This document shows, in pieces, positions 1-28,900 of a DNA stretch of 64,000 nucleotides. Every line of letters starts with the position of its first letter. Position 1 is the first letter of the stretch. The translations under genes and the position numbers were made by a program. The stretch is from Basidiobolus meristosporus CBS 931.73 (lineage: Eukaryota > Fungi > Basidiobolomycota), in assembly GCA_002104905.1 (NCBI GenBank), contig MCFE01000016.1, positions 124,001-188,000 on the forward strand, in the 5' to 3' direction. The notes under the pieces are model-generated. The model did not search any database. It worked only from the letters and a program-made list of their open reading frames with translations, and was not told the origin of the DNA.

Positions 1-1541
1 GACCGTTCTAAAATATATTTTGAGGTGCATTCATATTCGCCCTTTTTTAGATTTAATTTCCACACATTTAGCCATGGATCAAGCCCACCAATAGCAGCTC
101 GATAGCCAAGCAACCAGTGTGTAGCCACAAAATGGAGGTTATAACATCAAAGACTATATTTCAAAACGACCATTAATACAAATAAGGTTTTCCATATTAG
201 ATTTGGACCACCGTTTATAAACTCAGTCCGATCCGATTGGCTGTAGTGTGGTACGAGAAGAGTTGTTTCCTGAACTCTAGGACCCAAGAATTTCTTGGTC
301 ATACGAAAAAATGCTTATTTTGTTTATCCATATTCGCTAACCCGAGCAATTACCCAGAAGTTTATTCCTATTGAAGCGATGCTAATCCACCGAACAATCT
401 TCAAGGCGCTTCTATCCCACGAGCTTCCACAATTTGTGCATTACGTACAAGACCAATCGTGAAAATCCCACATTTTCGGCATGCCTGCGCGTTTTTTTCC
501 CAGACAGCTGGTGGAGCCTGAGGGTAGATAAAAGTATGGTGGTATTATTTTTTTGAAGTATTACTACCGTAAGCTGTGCAGAGATGTGCTATTCCTAATT
601 GAATGCCACCTGGTCGTTCGTTTTACTGGTGTATTGCCCAACTGCGATCGCATAACTTCTTGTAAGGCACGGTAGATACCTTGCCACTTTTCCATTCTTT
701 CATGTTTGAGCTGGATAATGATACTGATAATCTCGATATTATGAATTGGGCTAGAGTGAATGACACTATTATGTATTGAATAAGTTGTGAAAATACATTT
801 TGGAATTTTACCACATCTATTTCATTAAAACCGTGTGTTCTGAGAATGTTGTATACCCAGGCTTTCTTAAACGATTTAAACTATTTAGTAGTCACGTTTC
901 TAAAATTCAATCCATGGGTCATCAATTAATAGCCAATTCATCCCCCAAATCTACAATAATCAAATATGGGATATCTGATTCATCATTACAGCATAGCTCT
1001 CTACTCGACCGGATGCCTCTACATTCCATGAATGTATCAAGTTCAGAAGTTTTCAGTTATATAGTCTTGACGGATACGAAAGCGAGAGCAGGGTTCAGTT
1101 GCTGTACTTTTTAGAGCACATGAATTGATTCCCATATGGCGATAATAAAACCTCACAAAATGACTGAAATATTAAAAGTGACAACTTCTGGTCTCATGTT
1201 TAATTGGAGTATATTTGTGGATTTGGGATTGGGCATTTGGCCACATTGCGCGTTTGTTTGAGTCGAGGGAGAGAGTGCAAAAAGAGGAGTAGGAATAGAG
1301 CCTATTCAAGTCAAGGAAACAGAGGGTGGGTTACAAAATTTAGATCTCATTATGGGGGGGGGGGCTGCATTTCCATGCCAAAAAGTCCCAACAGTACCCG
1401 GCAGATGAGGAAATGTTGGCAATCAAAAGGTTTACGGTGAGGGCGGGTGAAGGGACTATGTCCATAGTTACTGACAGTTAGGAGAGAGCGCTGCGAGCAC
1501 GGGTAGATAGAGGAGCAGCAAGTCAAGATGAGGGGGGGGAA

Positions 1542-2717
1542 TCATAAGTGCTTGACCTTGTTGGTGACGTGCTCATACTCCATCAGGTTGGAGTTGATCT
1601 CCTCATATTTGCTGTTCACCAGGATTAGCGTGTGCACCTCCTCCACCTCCACCTCCACCTCCTTCGACACACACTGGGGCCCGAGGATGAAGCGCTCGGT
1701 GCACCAGAGGGCTAGCCTACGTGTGAATGTGGAGGTGAAGGTGAGGGAGGATGTGGACTCGGAGATGGATGCAGAGGGACCGCTCTGAGATTTCTCGTCG
1801 TAGTAGAAGGCGAGGAGATCACGCTTGACAGACTTGACCGCGGTGTGGAGCGCGGGGTCAAGTAGGAAGCACACAAAGTTGACGACCCCTTGGAGTGCGT
1901 TCGAGTACTCCTCCAAGTCGAGGCTGATCTCGATGCCCAGAGTGGGGGCGCACAGGTAAAGAATACGGACGACCATGGTGGGAAAGCCGACGATGAACAT
2001 CGCCACAGGATACATCAGTATATGTATGATGGCCTGACGGACTGCCTTCCGGGCCAGAAACTCGGAGCTCGAGACGATACCAACCTTCTTGCCGCCCAGC
2101 ACGGCATCGGTCTCGTTCTTCTCGGGCCCTGGAATGCCAAAGGGATGGAACTGAACGACGGCACGGGTGGTCCGCACGAGCTTCACCACAATCATGATGC
2201 AGATGACCAGTGTGTAGCAGAGGATGAGTGTGAACAGGACAAAGATGGTGAGGGTCAGTAGGTAAATTCTCACATCGCCAAAGAAGATCCCCCCGATACA
2301 CTCTGAGAGGATGGCAATGGCGAGCACAAAGATCGGTGGCGCGGCAAAGTAGATAGCTTGATGGTTGATCATCACTCGGACCTGGTGGACCAGCACGAGT
2401 TGCAGGTTGAGGACGATTTCAAAGGTGTACAGGATGAAGGTGAGCAAGGCCATCTCACCAATAACCGAGCTGATCTGGAATAGATTTGCACGATCGTGGA
2501 TGTTTTGGTCAAGGCTTCCGTCGTTTGCATATATCTGGACAAGCCTGAAGGCATGCCGCATTACATCGCAGATCGCACATAGCCCTACCAATCGGAACGA
2601 GATTCGCTCAACCAATTTCCTTTGATATAGCCAGAAGCCCAACATGGTAGTAACCATGACTACCGAGCAGAGGATCGAGAGAATATTGAAGACGGTGAAT
2701 ATAGTCCAGTTAAGCAT
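1542..2717 (-). CDS. 7-TM GPCR-like protein (cAMP-receptor-like/Git3-like family), left copy, 391 aa, intronless
   Basis: Seven hydrophobic segments, with the motifs ERISFRL..CD (TM2), ILMYP (TM6) and QGVVNFVCFLLDPAL (TM7) typical of fungal CAR/Git3-like receptors. Start taken at ATG 2717 because similarity to the right copy begins there; the 37-aa upstream extension in the ORF track is not conserved. Confidence 0.8.
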   Translation of the reverse strand: MLNWTIFTVFNILSILCSVVMVTTMLGFWLYQRKLVERISFRLVGLCAICDVMRHAFRLVQIYANDGSLDQNIHDRANLFQISSVIGEMALLTFILYTFEIVLNLQLVLVHQVRVMINHQAIYFAAPPIFVLAIAILSECIGGIFFGDVRIYLLTLTIFVLFTLILCYTLVICIMIVVKLVRTTRAVVQFHPFGIPGPEKNETDAVLGGKKVGIVSSSEFLARKAVRQAIIHILMYPVAMFIVGFPTMVVRILYLCAPTLGIEISLDLEEYSNALQGVVNFVCFLLDPALHTAVKSVKRDLLAFYYDEKSQSGPSASISESTSSLTFTSTFTRRLALWCTERFILGPQCVSKEVEVEVEEVHTLILVNSKYEEINSNLMEYEHVTNKVKHL

Positions 2718-3176
2718 TTTTCTCGTTAGTGATGCAGAGATGCTTGTCGTTGTATGTGTGCCGTATCCATGAACCTTTATATGCCACTCCACTCCATTCC
2801 ATCTCAAACCAACACACACAACTATCACTAACCATATTCCAAGAACCCAAATTCCTGTATCACAGTCCTACTTGAAATTCGCTAAATGACTAGCAGTGTA
2901 GTTTGATTTGCAGTTCATCTGGGCTGATTTCGGGAAATATATGATAGATTTACTGCTTTTGATATGGTTAGACGTTTCACCTGAAAAATTCACACATATG
3001 ATTCCAAGAATTTATGATTGAAACATGGCATGGGTCAGATTGATTCCGAGAAATATTTCGCCCAAACAAGTCAAAAGTCTGAATATATATATCCCACACT
3101 TGTCAAAGCATTTCGAATTAAACATACACTTGCAAGTTGAATTTGAACCTCTGCCTCTACATCACTAGCGAAGAGA
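2718..3176. promoter_or_regulatory. Shared bidirectional promoter of the GPCR pair
   Basis: Lies between two divergent ATGs. TATA-like ATATAAA on the minus strand at 2776-2782 and TATATATA at ~3084-3091 on plus. Repeated TTCC(A/G)AGAA at 2837, 3002 and 3044, plus a variant at 2928. Confidence 0.6.
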
Positions 3177-4352
3177 ATGCTTAACTGGACTATATTCACC
3201 GTCTTCAATATTCTCTCGATCCTCTGCTCGGTAGTCATGGTTACTACCATGTTGGGCTTCTGGCTATATCAAAGGAAATTGGTTGAGCGAATCTCGTTCC
3301 GATTGGTAGGGCTATGTGCGATCTGCGATGTAATGCGGCATGCCTTCAGGCTTGTCCAGATATATGCAAACGACGGAAGCCTTGACCAAAACATCCACGA
3401 TCGTGCAAATCTATTCCAGATCAGCTCGGTTATTGGTGAGATGGCCTTGCTCACCTTCATCCTGTACACCTTTGAAATCGTCCTCAACCTGCAACTCGTG
3501 CTGGTCCACCAGGTCCGAGTGATGATCAACCATCAAGCTATCTACTTTGCCGCGCCACCGATCTTTGTGCTCGCCATTGCCATCCTCTCAGAGTGTATCG
3601 GGGGGATCTTCTTTGGCGATGTGAGAATTTACCTACTGACCCTCACCATCTTTGTCCTGTTCACACTCATCCTCTGCTACACATTGGTCATCTGCATCAT
3701 GATTGTGGTGAAGCTCGTGCGGACCACCCGTGCCGTCGTTCAGTTCCATCCCTTTGGCATTCCAGGGCCCGAGAAGAACGAGACCGATGCCGTGCTGGGC
3801 GGCAAGAAGGTTGGTATCGTCTCGAGCTCCGAGTTTCTGGCCCGGAAGGCAGTCCGTCAGGCCATCATACATATACTGATGTATCCTGTGGCGATGTTCA
3901 TCGTCGGCTTTCCCACCATGGTCGTCCGTATTCTTTACCTGTGCGCCCCCACTCTGGGCATCGAGATCAGCCTCGACTTGGAGGAGTACTCGAACGCACT
4001 CCAAGGGGTCGTCAACTTTGTGTGCTTCCTACTTGACCCCGCGCTCCACACCGCGGTCAAGTCTGTCAAGCGTGACCTCCTCGCCTTCTACTACGACGAG
4101 AAATCTCAGAGCGGTCCCTCTGCATCCATCTCCGAGTCCACATCCTCCCTCACCTTCACCTCCACATTCACACGTAGGCTAGCCCTCTGGTGCACCGAGC
4201 GCTTCATCCTCGGGCCCCAGTGTGTGTCGAAGGAGGTGGAGGTGGAGGTGGAGGAGGTGCACACGCTAATCCTGGTGAATAGCAAATATGAGGAGATCAA
4301 CTCCAACCTGATGGAGTATGAGCACGTCACCAACAAGGTCAAGCACTTATGA
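3177..4352 (+). CDS. 7-TM GPCR-like protein, right copy, 391 aa, protein identical to the left copy
   Basis: Base-by-base comparison with the reverse complement of 1542-2717 shows 3 differences, all synonymous C/T (3684/2210, 4076/1818, 4280/1614). Confidence 0.8.
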   Translation: MLNWTIFTVFNILSILCSVVMVTTMLGFWLYQRKLVERISFRLVGLCAICDVMRHAFRLVQIYANDGSLDQNIHDRANLFQISSVIGEMALLTFILYTFEIVLNLQLVLVHQVRVMINHQAIYFAAPPIFVLAIAILSECIGGIFFGDVRIYLLTLTIFVLFTLILCYTLVICIMIVVKLVRTTRAVVQFHPFGIPGPEKNETDAVLGGKKVGIVSSSEFLARKAVRQAIIHILMYPVAMFIVGFPTMVVRILYLCAPTLGIEISLDLEEYSNALQGVVNFVCFLLDPALHTAVKSVKRDLLAFYYDEKSQSGPSASISESTSSLTFTSTFTRRLALWCTERFILGPQCVSKEVEVEVEEVHTLILVNSKYEEINSNLMEYEHVTNKVKHL

Positions 4353-5252
4353 TTCCCCCCCCTCAACTTGACTTGCTGCTCCTCTACCTACCCGTGCTCG
4401 CAGCGCTCTCTCCTAACTGTCAGTAACTATGGACATAGTCCCTTCACCCGCCCTCACCGTAAACCTTTTGATTGCCAACATTTCCTCATCTGCCGGGTAC
4501 TGTTGGGACTTTTTGGCATGGAAATGCAGCCCCCCCCCATAATGAGATCTAAATTTTGTAACCCACCCTCTGTTTCCTTGACTTGAATAGGCTCTATTCC
4601 TACTCCTCTTTTTGCACTCTCTCCCTCGACCCAAACGAACGCGCAATGTGGCCAATGCCATATCTCAATAACACTAAAGCTCACTAAGTAAATATCCTAC
4701 AATCTCATTCATTGTAAGGTGCGATCGTAATCACAAACGGCTATTTGTGTATGCACGTGGTATTAATCTATTTATTATGATTTACTTCCAAGACAAAATC
4801 TTATAACGCGTTATGTATATTGCAGTGTTTAGTTAAAGTGATGTTAGCGTACCGTTGGTAAATGCCCCTTCGTCCATTATGCCATAGTAATAATTCTAAT
4901 CGAAAGCATGTTCGTGAGTATGAGTAATAATGTATAGTAACTGGTTGTATCTGATATCATCTCAGTGCTTTCCATTTTAGGTAGCCAACCAAGATGGGTT
5001 CCAACTTGAATATACAAAGATTCTATGAGCATAATTATTCGAATGGGAAAAGATGGGAAAACACCCAAAACGGATGGGCTCATTCTGGTAAAATGATGCA
5101 ATCACGCGAGGGGCATAATATAGCCATTCCGCTTTTGGAGCAAAATTGATGAGCTAATGCCAAATGAATTTTTTATTGTATAGAAAGTCAATTGCAAGAA
5201 CAGGCTAGGTAAAATTAGCGTAAACCTCTGTCCAACGATAAGTTTATTTTCA

Positions 5253-6621
5253 ATGAACAAACAAGATACTGCCACTAGCACACCTTCCCCCACTGACGCT
5301 ATGCGTAACCTGTTAGTTTTCTCTGGCTCTTCGCACCCCGATCTTACCGAAGCAATCTGTGCTCGTTTGGGGGTTGAGATTGCGCCCTCCAATTTAGGGA
5401 AGTTCTCTAACGCGGAGACCAATGTTGAAATTAGGAAATCCGTTCGTGACCAGCAAGTTTACATAGTGCAGTCTGGCTCTGGCAAAGTAAACGACAACTT
5501 TATGGAACTTCTGATTATGATATCTGCTTGCAAAACTGCTAGTGCAAAGAAGGTGACTGTGGTTCTTCCTTACTTTCCTTATTCCAGACAGCCAGATATC
5601 CCGTACGCCAAAAGCGGGATTCCCGTCCGGAAAAGTGCTTACGTAGGCCTTCGGGACTCCCCCAACCTTTCCAATGTCGTTCTTTCACCCGCTGTCGATC
5701 CAACAAATAAGGATAAAGATTCTGATGTTCCAACCGAATTACTCCTTCCCTCTGTTGCTCCAATGAGCTCTATTTCTTCCATTTTGAACAGTAACATTTC
5801 GGAAAAGCCCTTGCCTACAGCGTCCCCAAGAATTGCGGCTATTAGTCAACAAAAGAATTCTACCGTCCACGATCCGGTTGACAACCGCTGGGTTAAACCT
5901 GACGGTGCTTACAAACACTGGGTGGCCAGATCTGGTGAGCTTGTGGCTAATCTACTCATCGCAGCTGGTAAGGCCGATAGTACTCCTCACCGCAGACTCG
6001 CCTACTAACATATCTTTCACAGGAGCTGACCACATCATTACCATGGACCTGCACGATCCTCAGTTCCAAGGATATTTTGATATTCCAGTAGACATGATTA
6101 GCGCTGAATCATCTATTCTTGATTACATCAGATCAAAAATACCCAACTACAAGGACGCAGTGATTGTTTCCCCTGATGCTGGTGGTGCTAAAAGAGCCAC
6201 CTCAGTAGCTAACCAACTAAACCTTGACCTCGCACTCATCCATAAAGAGGGAAAGACCAACGAAGTGTCGCGTATGTCCCTCGTAGGGGATGTCAGCGGA
6301 AAACCTGTGATCATCATCGACGACATTGCGGATACTTGTGGCACACTAGGACTTGCCACTGAGCTACTCCATCAAAGAGGCGCTACAGAAATCTATGCAG
6401 TGGTTACCCACGGAATTCTCTCCGGCAAAGCCGTCGAGATCATCAACAAATCACCATTGAGCCAAGTGGTGATCACCAACACCGTTCCTCACGAAGAGAA
6501 AAAAACCACATGCAGCAAACTACGTACGATTGATGTATCTGGGCCGTTCGCCGAGGCCATTCGAAGAATTCACAACGGGGAAACCCTTGCGCCTCTATTC
6601 AAAAAGAAAGCCTATAATTAA
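5253..6621 (+). CDS. PRS5: Ribose-phosphate pyrophosphokinase, Prs5-type; exons 5253-5967 and 6023-6621 (437 aa; alternative start at 5301)
   Basis: [23 protein letters not shown] followed by a ~100-aa Ser/Pro-rich insert (NHR5-1-like), AAG|[20 protein letters not shown] and [11 protein letters not shown]. Intron 5968-6022 (GTAAGG..TACTAAC..CAG) joins the two ORF-track frames in phase. Confidence 0.93.
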
Positions 6622-25981: not shown

Positions 25982-28900
25982 TGCTAGAGTCAAGTTCAAA
26001 TTAGGACTCTTGCCAAACACATTGCAGTAATCCTGTAGCTGTCACAGAATGCTCCTGAACATTGAGCTACACCCCTCACTTAGTGTCACCAGTGTATCAC
26101 CTCTATAATGGTATAAATACTCCGCTTCTTTGTGAATATACAACTGTTGAATTGTTATGACTCTTAATCATTGAATTCCTTATATCTCAAACACCTCTTG
26201 AAACGCAGCAGGTTATGAGCCTCAATTGCTTTAGTCTATTGTAAGGATAACTTTGACTAGCTAATAGAACACCACAAGCTTGTACCTTATAGAGGAGAGA
26301 CTTGTTAGGAAGAACTTTTGACCTGACAAATCAATATGCAGATCCATCTTGCAAAAAGGAAGCTTTAAAACATACCAATAGGAGAAGAACTTGAACCCAA
26401 AGGAGCAGCAGAAAAAGCTGAGAAGTTTTAAGTGAAGGGGGGAATAGACTTGTTCCGTTGGATAGTGCCACATTGAGCCATGAGTGCCAAATGATGCCAT
26501 AGTGTGCCAGAGGGGCCAAATGAGCCTCTATCTGGCCACAGAGTGTGAAACATAGCTCCGCATCTTCATGCAAAGCAGCCCCTGTGTTTCACCCATTGTG
26601 TTGGAGAAAATCCATTTTTTGACCTTTTTTTTTGGATCAATGTTGTGCAGGATGTGCTAAAGCACAAGCAGATTGAAGATATGCATCTGGTACTCAATAC
26701 CCATGGCACTCTGAATCTAGCTCCTGTAGCTTGTATCATGTCACAAAAATGAATGGCACTATCTTGGTCCACTGGTACTATCTGACACTATAAGTGCTTT
26801 TTATAGATCTTACTTTAGGGCTAATATTTAAATATAGTGCCAGATAGTACCAGTGGACCAAGATAGTGCCATTCCTTTTTGTGACATAATGCAAGCTACA
26901 GGAGCTAGATTCAGAGTGCCATGGGTATTGAGTACCAGATGCATATCTTCACTTCTCCTGTGCTCTTACACATCCTCATCTACATTGATCCACAAAAAAA
27001 GGTCAAAAAATGGATTTTCTTCTGTGCAATGGGTGAAACACAGGGGCTGCTTTGCATGAAAATGCGGAGCTACATTTCACACTCTGTGGCCAAGTATAGG
27101 CTCACTTGACCTCTCTGGCACACTATGGCATCATTTGGCACTCATGGCTCAATGTGGCACTATCCAACGGAACAAGTCTAATGCCCTCAAAGCCATATAT
27201 ATCAAGATGCAATATTCCACTATTGAATAAGTTCATGATTCTAATACTGCCAAAGCAACATAGGAGTCCTTAGAGACAGCTTTTAGAGCAAAGTCTGTAT
27301 CAAGCAAGCTTTGTTTAAGAAGAAAGTTCTTCCGCATGAGTATGACATGCAGTCTGACCTTGTGCAGTGTGAATGGATGATTTTTTTATAAAGAACCCAG
27401 AAGGAGTGACCTAGCAGAAATAATCATTCAGAATGCTTCATTCATCTTGGAAAAGCATACAGAAAAGAAGGGAACGCAACAGAACCAAAGATTACCTGGT
27501 TGGTGTAACTACAGTTAGAGCTAGGACACTGCACCAGAAACTGCAAGAAGAAACATGCTGACAAAAAATACAAGCTAAAGGAGGTAAATCACCTAGCTTC
27601 AGAAGAGCAGTTTCTTATTACAGTAAAAGAAAGTGCAAGTAGCCATAGTAATGAATGGTATACTGACTCTCTAGCACCAACATTTTGTTTGCAGAAGCTA
27701 TAATGAATATAATATAAGTATATTGGTGGTACAAAGGAGTGCTTAGGCAATATGAAGACTATTCCTGCAAGAAAGGCTTACCTGGAAGAACACTCTGCAT
27801 GGGAAGCTACCATCAGTGGGTCTGGACAGCTCAGTCTGAGCTACTACTTGGGGGCTTAGAGATAAAAACTGACTGAAACACTCTGTTACAAGTCTTGATA
27901 TCAGAGTTTTAGTGGAGTAGGGAGTTGAGTTAGTATTGTATACAGTAAAACTTGAACTGATTTTTATTGCGCTTGCAGCAGCTGCTAATATATAATTTGC
28001 CAGATCAATTGGGGACTAATTGGATTTCCTAATGTAGGTTGCAGCTGATGACTCATTTGATTGCTTTGCCATCACCCAATGAGATCCTACTTAATGACTG
28101 TATTTATGTCTGATAAGGATCTGCTGATTCATTTGCTAACTAATACTACTGGTTTGATAGATAACACTGATATACTGATAGGCTAAATATATAACTAATT
28201 GATTTGACAAAAAAATGTTCTAACTAAAACATTCAAGCAGTAGATCAAAACAGCTCTATGTGCTTGTACAGCTAAAAACCCATGCTCAGCAAGTGATCAA
28301 CAACCAGGGACTGAGGCTTGTTCTTACTAAGCTCAGCTGCGCAATTATGTGTGAGAAAAGAAAAGAAACTGGCTTTGGGAATCAGAGTTCACAATATTTG
28401 CAAGTTAAGAATTAAGATAGCTGTATTTGGGTATGCTAACACTGTTAAAAGTGCCTGAGAGACATTGTAAAGGAGGCTAGGACATATTGGTTAGTAAAAA
28501 GGAGCCAACAAGTGTAAAACCAACATGTTCTTGGCCGCCATTACTTTACTCTAATCAAATCTAGTGTTTGCAAGGGATGTTGACTTGGCAAACAAGCTAG
28601 AGAGCATTTCAGAAGCTCAGGAGGCATAATACTATCAAAATACTAGCTACTATGTGCTCACACATTTGTGAGCCTATGAGGATGTTATTCCTTAGAACCA
28701 AGAGGTATCTCATGAGGTTAATTGATCACAAGACAAGATATGTATGAATGTACTTTCCACAGACAAAGGTTGAGGCTCTGCAAATATTTAAGCACTTTAA
28801 GTACAAGGCACAAACCCAAACTGGGGAGGATTAATGGCTTTGAGGTAATAATGCAGCAGAGTACTGCTCTAAATGGTGTGCAAAGTGCTATGCAACTACC

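Follow-up and report, generated by a model that had tools for sequence, protein, structure and literature searches.

Why should two copies of a receptor gene, lying head to head in one genome, be nearly identical down to their silent sites when the DNA just upstream of their start codons is not? The question is raised by a locus of the early-diverging fungus Basidiobolus meristosporus CBS 931.73 (assembly GCA_002104905.1), which we analyzed within a 64-kb stretch of the 251-kb contig MCFE01000016.1; this whole stretch is called the window below, and positions given without a contig label refer to it. The locus carries two divergent genes for a predicted receptor with seven transmembrane (7-TM) helices, and a first-pass annotation of the window had read the pair as an old inverted duplication kept alike by gene conversion. 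We compared it with the corresponding region of a second species, Basidiobolus ranarum (assembly GCA_040143965.1), whose contigs are labeled L001, L003, and L004. Taken together, the evidence makes it quite likely that the pair is an ancient gene palindrome maintained by conversion between its arms.

Two inverted arms with a sharp inner edge

A repeat search places the inverted arms at 1237-2739 and 3155-4655, about 1.5 kb each, with a spacer of 415 nucleotides (nt) between them. The search returned two blocks, 1356-2739 with 3155-4538 (1384 nt, 99%) and 1237-1362 with 4530-4655 (126 nt, 98%), which are a single arm pair divided at a 2-nt length difference in a G-run. In a global alignment, 49 to 50 positions match in every 50-nt block throughout the arms, and matching is at random level outside them. 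Each arm contains one intronless gene of 391 codons plus a stop, on the minus strand at 1542-2717 (left copy) and on the plus strand at 3177-4352 (right copy). Both are recognized from their open reading frames (ORFs) and translations, and both are annotated publicly, the left one as L002 8366-9541.

The two genes stand head to head, 459 nt apart from ATG to ATG. Their coding sequences (CDSs) differ at 3 of 1176 nt (positions 508, 900, and 1104), all of them synonymous C/T differences, and the encoded proteins are identical. The likeness continues past the stop codons into about 305 nt of 3' flank, probably the 3' untranslated region, which extends over 1237-1541 on the left (minus strand) and matches 4353-4655 on the right (plus strand), with outer boundaries at about 1237 and 4655. 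This flank has 4 substitutions (1255, 1261, 1507, and 1528) and the single 2-nt indel in the G-run, so that the arms overall are ~99.5% identical. On all these points the first-pass annotation was accurate: alignment and ORFs confirm the intronless, protein-identical pair of 391 amino acids, the 459-bp spacing, and the three synonymous C/T differences, and the ~310 bp of near-identical 3' flank that it described correspond to our ~305 nt.

The situation changes at the start codon. The 22-nt leaders immediately upstream of the two ATGs (2718-2739 on the minus strand and its diverged counterpart, 3155-3176 on the plus strand) can still be aligned, at 17 of 22 positions (~77%), and the five differences are all purine transitions. 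Seventeen matches would arise by chance with a probability of 6e-6 at a 30% background, and the step in divergence at the ATG, from 7/1481 to 5/22, has a Fisher p of 3e-7. The step described in the first-pass annotation is therefore no product of chance; past the ATG there are 22 to 60 nt of older, indel-ridden homology, after which the two sides become unrecognizable as relatives. Within the arms, neutral divergence is roughly even, with a synonymous divergence (dS) of 0.0108 and a nonsynonymous divergence (dN) of 0 between the left and right CDSs and ~1.3% in the 3' flank, so the only real step is the one at the ATG and there is none between CDS and flank.

The corresponding pair in B. ranarum

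In B. meristosporus, the receptor pair is flanked on the left by the gene for subunit F of the vacuolar ATPase (V-ATPase; ATP-synt_F, minus strand) and on the right by a phosphoribosyl pyrophosphate (PRPP) synthetase gene (plus strand). The only close relative of the receptor that we found is a 375-amino-acid protein of B. ranarum, with 63% identity by BLASTP and 65% on aligned residues. Its gene, at 818-1945 of L001, is followed by ATP-synt_F, which is the arrangement of the B. meristosporus left copy. Positions 1-134 of L001 are the inverted complement of 718-851, so that L001 opens within a second copy, head to head with the first, and includes its initial 34 nt. Between about -80 and +34 the two copies differ at one base only, which turns ATG into CTG in the second. 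Beyond the matched -80 region come ~25 degraded nt ending at a shared TATATATAG, and there similarity stops. At the other end, L004 1-123 equals L001 2168-2290, in the receptor 3' flank, except for 1 nt, and then diverges and reaches a PRPP synthetase gene, one of two of this type that B. ranarum carries. Conserved blocks in the outer flanks are colinear between the window and B. ranarum on both sides. Pieced together from these contigs, the order in B. ranarum is ATP-synt_F(-) - copy(-) - spacer - copy'(+) - PRPP synthetase(+), and the pair occupies the same position in the same orientation in the two species. The sister-species comparison on which the first-pass annotation had staked its reading was thus possible in part: a pair between the same flanks and in the same orientation is there, with copies that are alike in their visible parts, and the middle of the second copy is unassembled.

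The B. ranarum arms measure ~1.55 kb, and their visible ends match at 235 of 237 nt. The homogenized part extends ~80 to 97 nt upstream of the gene, as far as the TATA element, and covers the core promoter. As in B. meristosporus, the arm edge is sharp and is followed by a short degraded zone, and an alignment of both species shows the leader motif to be recognizable in all four copies. The CTG is the sole difference within 114 nt; if it is real, one B. ranarum copy lacks a start codon and is still homogenized. To a small degree, it speaks against both copies having to work.

Between species the picture is very different from that within one genome. The receptor CDSs are 67 to 70% identical, with a dS of 1.67 and a dN of 0.235, and the resulting dN/dS of ~0.14 shows that the protein is under purifying selection. 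PRPP synthetase, compared across its three loci, has a dS of 1.3 to 1.9 and a dN of ~0.074. Judged by synonymous divergence, the palindrome structure appears to be over 100 times as old as its arms. The 3' flank within the arms is ~99% identical inside each species and gives no BLAST match between them; since this noncoding DNA is near-identical within species and cannot be aligned between them, the identity of the arms is not due to purifying selection. As judged by sequence identity, and for B. ranarum in the visible parts of the copies, likeness follows species and not position, and this within-species grouping points to concerted evolution by gene conversion from arm to arm.

Two further causes of the identity were considered and rejected. 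Purifying selection alone is excluded, as the noncoding arm DNA is identical too, and so is a general homogenization of all repeats, as transposon copies in the window are only 60 to 93% identical.

Proposed origin and upkeep of the palindrome

The history that we favor would begin with the inverted duplication of a whole 7-TM receptor transcription unit between the V-ATPase subunit F and PRPP synthetase genes, before the lineages of B. meristosporus and B. ranarum split. Since then the arms (~1.5 kb, around a spacer of 0.4 to 0.6 kb) would have been copied onto each other repeatedly by intrachromosomal gene conversion, so that within a species the copies would change in step even as the two species grew apart, which is concerted evolution. 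At their edges, the arms would no longer be reached by conversion and would decay, and in B. meristosporus the promoter-proximal part would already be lost from the homogenized zone. What we find at the locus is a unique spacer between inverted arms, a structure older than its arms, copies that group within species, and homogenization at neutral sites. The grouping of left with left and right with right copies across species, the outcome that would speak against conversion, was not seen. With the B. ranarum pair at the same site and its copies alike, the first-pass proposal of an old inverted duplication homogenized by gene conversion is thus well supported.

Between the arms, the AT-rich unique spacer (2740-3154; 37% GC) is without arm homology and contains both promoters. 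TATA-like elements can be read from the sequence at ~2775-2783 (minus strand) and ~3084-3092 (plus strand). One spacer block of 28 nt, TATTCCAAGAACCCAAATTCCTGTATCA (2835-2862; L001:184-211), is common to both species, identical at 25 of 28 positions, with a local alignment score of 41 against a mean of 21 and a maximum of 35 for shuffled sequence. We detected no further significant conserved blocks in the spacer, the shared 8- to 10-mers being within the shuffle range in both orientations. The block lies beside the ATPase-side copy in B. meristosporus and beside the PRPP-side copy in B. ranarum. Tentatively, a single crossover between the arms that inverted the spacer would explain this opposite placement. 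The block may be a regulatory site shared by the divergent promoters. A partial inverted second copy of it is present in B. ranarum at L001 301-314 (13/14 nt), ~90 nt away, which is not significant by itself.

The base composition of the arms is also unusual. Noncoding arm DNA has a GC content of 50% in B. meristosporus (51% in the right arm) and 39% in B. ranarum, with 35 to 37% (37% left, 35% right) and 35%, respectively, just outside the arms and 37% in the spacers of both species. The GC content at third codon positions is 73% in the receptor versus 46% in the neighboring PRPP synthetase of B. meristosporus and 52% versus 38% in B. ranarum. GC-biased conversion has been reported for the palindromes of the human Y and the primate X chromosome (PMC3723533, PMC8981503). 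The raised GC of the Basidiobolus arms is consistent with such a bias, short of proof.

Several points weigh against an ancient palindrome maintained by conversion. The conversion events themselves are not directly observed, and the comparison covers only two species. The GC argument is moderate, other nearby 3' regions having ~44% GC, and the proposed spacer flip depends on the single 28-nt block. The second B. ranarum copy is visible only at its ends (114 + 123 nt); it is unassembled from nt 35 of the CDS to ~222 nt past the stop, where an internal deletion is possible, and it has CTG in place of ATG (L001:32-34), near the contig end. The missing middle would be explained if a short-read assembly had collapsed two near-identical arms into one. 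Then there is L003 (JASJQH010007158.1, 8570-11346), where 784 nt and no receptor gene separate ATP-synt_F from PRPP synthetase, and tblastn found no receptor remnant there. Finally, the three PRPP synthetase loci are about equidistant (dN ~0.074 each) and agree with more than one sequence of duplication, speciation, and gain or loss; the L003 gene is equally far from the L004 copy (dS 1.31) and from that of B. meristosporus. L003 would either have lost the palindrome or have branched off before it arose, and on the sequences at hand the palindrome would predate the split between B. meristosporus and L001/L004 either way.

B. ranarum holds two old paralogous versions of this neighborhood, one on L001/L004 and one on L003; an Arm-repeat gene is also common to L003 and the B. 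meristosporus contig. The two versions could go back to an ancient duplication of a segment or of the whole genome, to a hybrid, or to an assembly of mixed origin.

Other histories have to be set beside this one. The two species might each have duplicated a single ancestral receptor gene at this site recently, independently, and head to head. A within-species dS of 0.011 is what a young duplication would give, the arm boundaries differ (about -22 nt in B. meristosporus and about -97 nt in B. ranarum), and at L003 the site exists with no receptor in it. However, the same gene, site, and orientation, a nearly equal arm length (1.50 versus ~1.55 kb), and a similar spacer would then all have to have come about twice, the older 22 to 60 nt of homology beside the ATG would be left unexplained, and an extra inversion would be needed to bring the 28-nt block beside opposite copies. 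We therefore regard two separate duplications as unlikely.

The pair could instead stem from one recent duplication in B. meristosporus, with an inner junction formed by an error-prone or template-switching event of which the 5/22 step would be the scar. The even neutral divergence of CDS and 3' flank (~1.1 to 1.3%) is in keeping with such an event, and within the B. meristosporus genome the case for a greater age rests wholly on ~22 to 60 nt. Yet all five leader differences are transitions and there is no filler sequence, the leader motif is kept in both B. ranarum copies, and the pair in B. ranarum attests to the age of the structure, all of which makes a recent origin very improbable. As for an assembly error, in which a chimeric long read or a fold-back would have produced a mirror image of a single gene, palindromic artifacts can occur in PacBio assemblies, and the CBS 931.73 genome was sequenced with PacBio (PMC7466969). 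We give this possibility almost no weight. The pair is located in midcontig, ~125 kb into MCFE01000016.1, its 415-nt spacer is not palindromic, 7 substitutions plus indels separate the arms, and the flanks are distinct, with each matching B. ranarum, so the locus is not a fold-back artifact; in addition, an independent short-read assembly, that of B. ranarum, shows both arm ends.

If a palindrome maintained by conversion is the correct reading, it shows concerted evolution in an early-diverging fungus in a compact and bounded form, with arms ~99.5% alike, silent sites saturated between species, and eroding arm edges captured at a different stage in each of the two species. In annotation, the receptor pair should not be taken as a recent duplication, and dating paralogues by dS in the B. 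meristosporus genome would be misleading. It is possible, and we lean somewhat against it, that Basidiobolus keeps many small one-gene palindromes past synonymous saturation by conversion, with occasional spacer flips that swap the neighbors of gene copies and promoter elements. If this were true, duplicates would be maintained across the genome in a manner that has not been described in fungi.

The receptor, its surroundings, and known systems

The first-pass annotation had called the protein a 7-TM G protein-coupled receptor (GPCR) related to the cyclic adenosine monophosphate (cAMP) receptors (CAR) and Git3. Its 7-TM part is borne out by an AlphaFold (AF2) model built from 21 sequences (predicted local distance difference test score 77, predicted template modeling score 0.75), which has seven long transmembrane helices plus helix 8 and a disordered third intracellular loop and tail. 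A Foldseek search with the model against PDB gave only GPCRs among the best 50 matches, all with a probability of 1.00. By sequence the relationship is much fainter. Pfam returned 0 families for the receptor, even at E values up to 1, and none for its Basidiobolus paralogues, and the receptor itself stays below the gathering cutoffs of Dicty_CAR (PF05462), Git3 (PF11710), and GPR_Gpa2_C (PF11970). An exhaustive HMMER search collected 33 relatives, which are the Basidiobolus paralogues and proteins of Bifiguratus, Endogone, Neoconidiobolus, and Calcarisporiella. One of them, P0111 of Bifiguratus (22% identical), passes Dicty_CAR with 31.5 bits against a cutoff of 21, P0112 has a match to that family below the cutoff, and three remote relatives have subthreshold matches to GPR_Gpa2_C (13.5 to 15.6 bits against a cutoff of 21). 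A profile built from 21 relatives matched GPCRs among PDB sequences only weakly (E of at least 0.07), and the Atlas neighbors of the protein fall into clusters partly labeled Dicty_CAR or Git3.

Judging from the model, the protein is a receptor with a GPCR fold that is distantly cAMP receptor-like, and it is not a demonstrable member of Dicty_CAR. Of the CAR/Git3-like label, then, the GPCR fold and the tie to remote relatives that match Dicty_CAR can be kept; the receptor itself fails in Pfam and the relation is a distant one. At two paralogue loci of B. ranarum, P0108 and P0109, we found no inverted repeats, and a palindromic layout therefore does not characterize the receptor family. A literature search for Basidiobolus together with G protein-coupled receptors returned no papers. 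For receptor biology little is gained from the locus, and nothing indicates that two copies are required or that the pair has the dosage-doubling or self-repairing role raised as a possibility in the first-pass annotation.

The PRPP synthetase gene that served as the right flank marker for the orthology of the locus lies at 5301-6621 on the plus strand, has one intron, and codes for Pribosyltran_N, Pribosyltran, and Pribosyl_synth domains. The palindrome marks the border between a gene-dense stretch and a transposon graveyard (10000-62000). From ~10 to 62 kb the window is occupied by decayed dispersed repeats of 3 to 8 copies that are 60 to 93% identical, and ORF fragments in 10000-62000 correspond to copia-type gag/Pol, reverse transcriptase, and tnp2 (CACTA-type) transposase. 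Within this transposon-rich block there is also a hairpin-like inverted repeat at 26439-27186, with 354-nt arms of 91% identity and 40 nt between them. Rfam gave no match anywhere in the window.

Palindrome arms in mammals range from 9 kb to 1.45 Mb. With 1.5-kb arms and one gene per arm, the Basidiobolus locus is thousandfold smaller; it is not on a known nonrecombining chromosome, and the divergence that it spans is far deeper (dS above 1.5). Much else is shared with the mammalian sex chromosome palindromes (P1 to P8 of the human Y and those of the primate X): inverted arms with a unique spacer and more than 99% identity attributed to conversion, persistence across species while the arms evolve together, raised GC attributed to GC-biased conversion, and, tentatively for Basidiobolus, occasional inversions of the spacer (PMC3723533, PMC8981503).

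With the cAMP receptor-like and Git3-type GPCRs of fungi (PF05462, PF11710, and PF11970), the Basidiobolus protein shares the seven transmembrane helices, helix 8, and the GPCR fold. It differs from them in that neither it nor its paralogues match any Pfam model and in its nearly missing N terminus.

Inverted pairs with a homogenized coding region that ends near the gene ends are present in Drosophila, in hsp70 at 87A7 and in amylase. The inverted paralogues of Caenorhabditis are likewise protein-coding pairs whose coding region is homogenized and where homogenization stops near the gene ends (PMC3966223). In contrast to both, the Basidiobolus pair belongs to an early-diverging fungus and to another gene family, and its 3' flank is homogenized and its 5' flank is not. 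Duplicated ribosomal protein genes of fungi are also paralogues kept alike by repeated conversion over long periods, but they are dispersed and are said to be converted under dosage constraints (PMC6993855), whereas the Basidiobolus pair is a local receptor palindrome. Inverted duplicates and palindromes are well known to evolve in concert, and the receptor palindrome of Basidiobolus is a clean new case.

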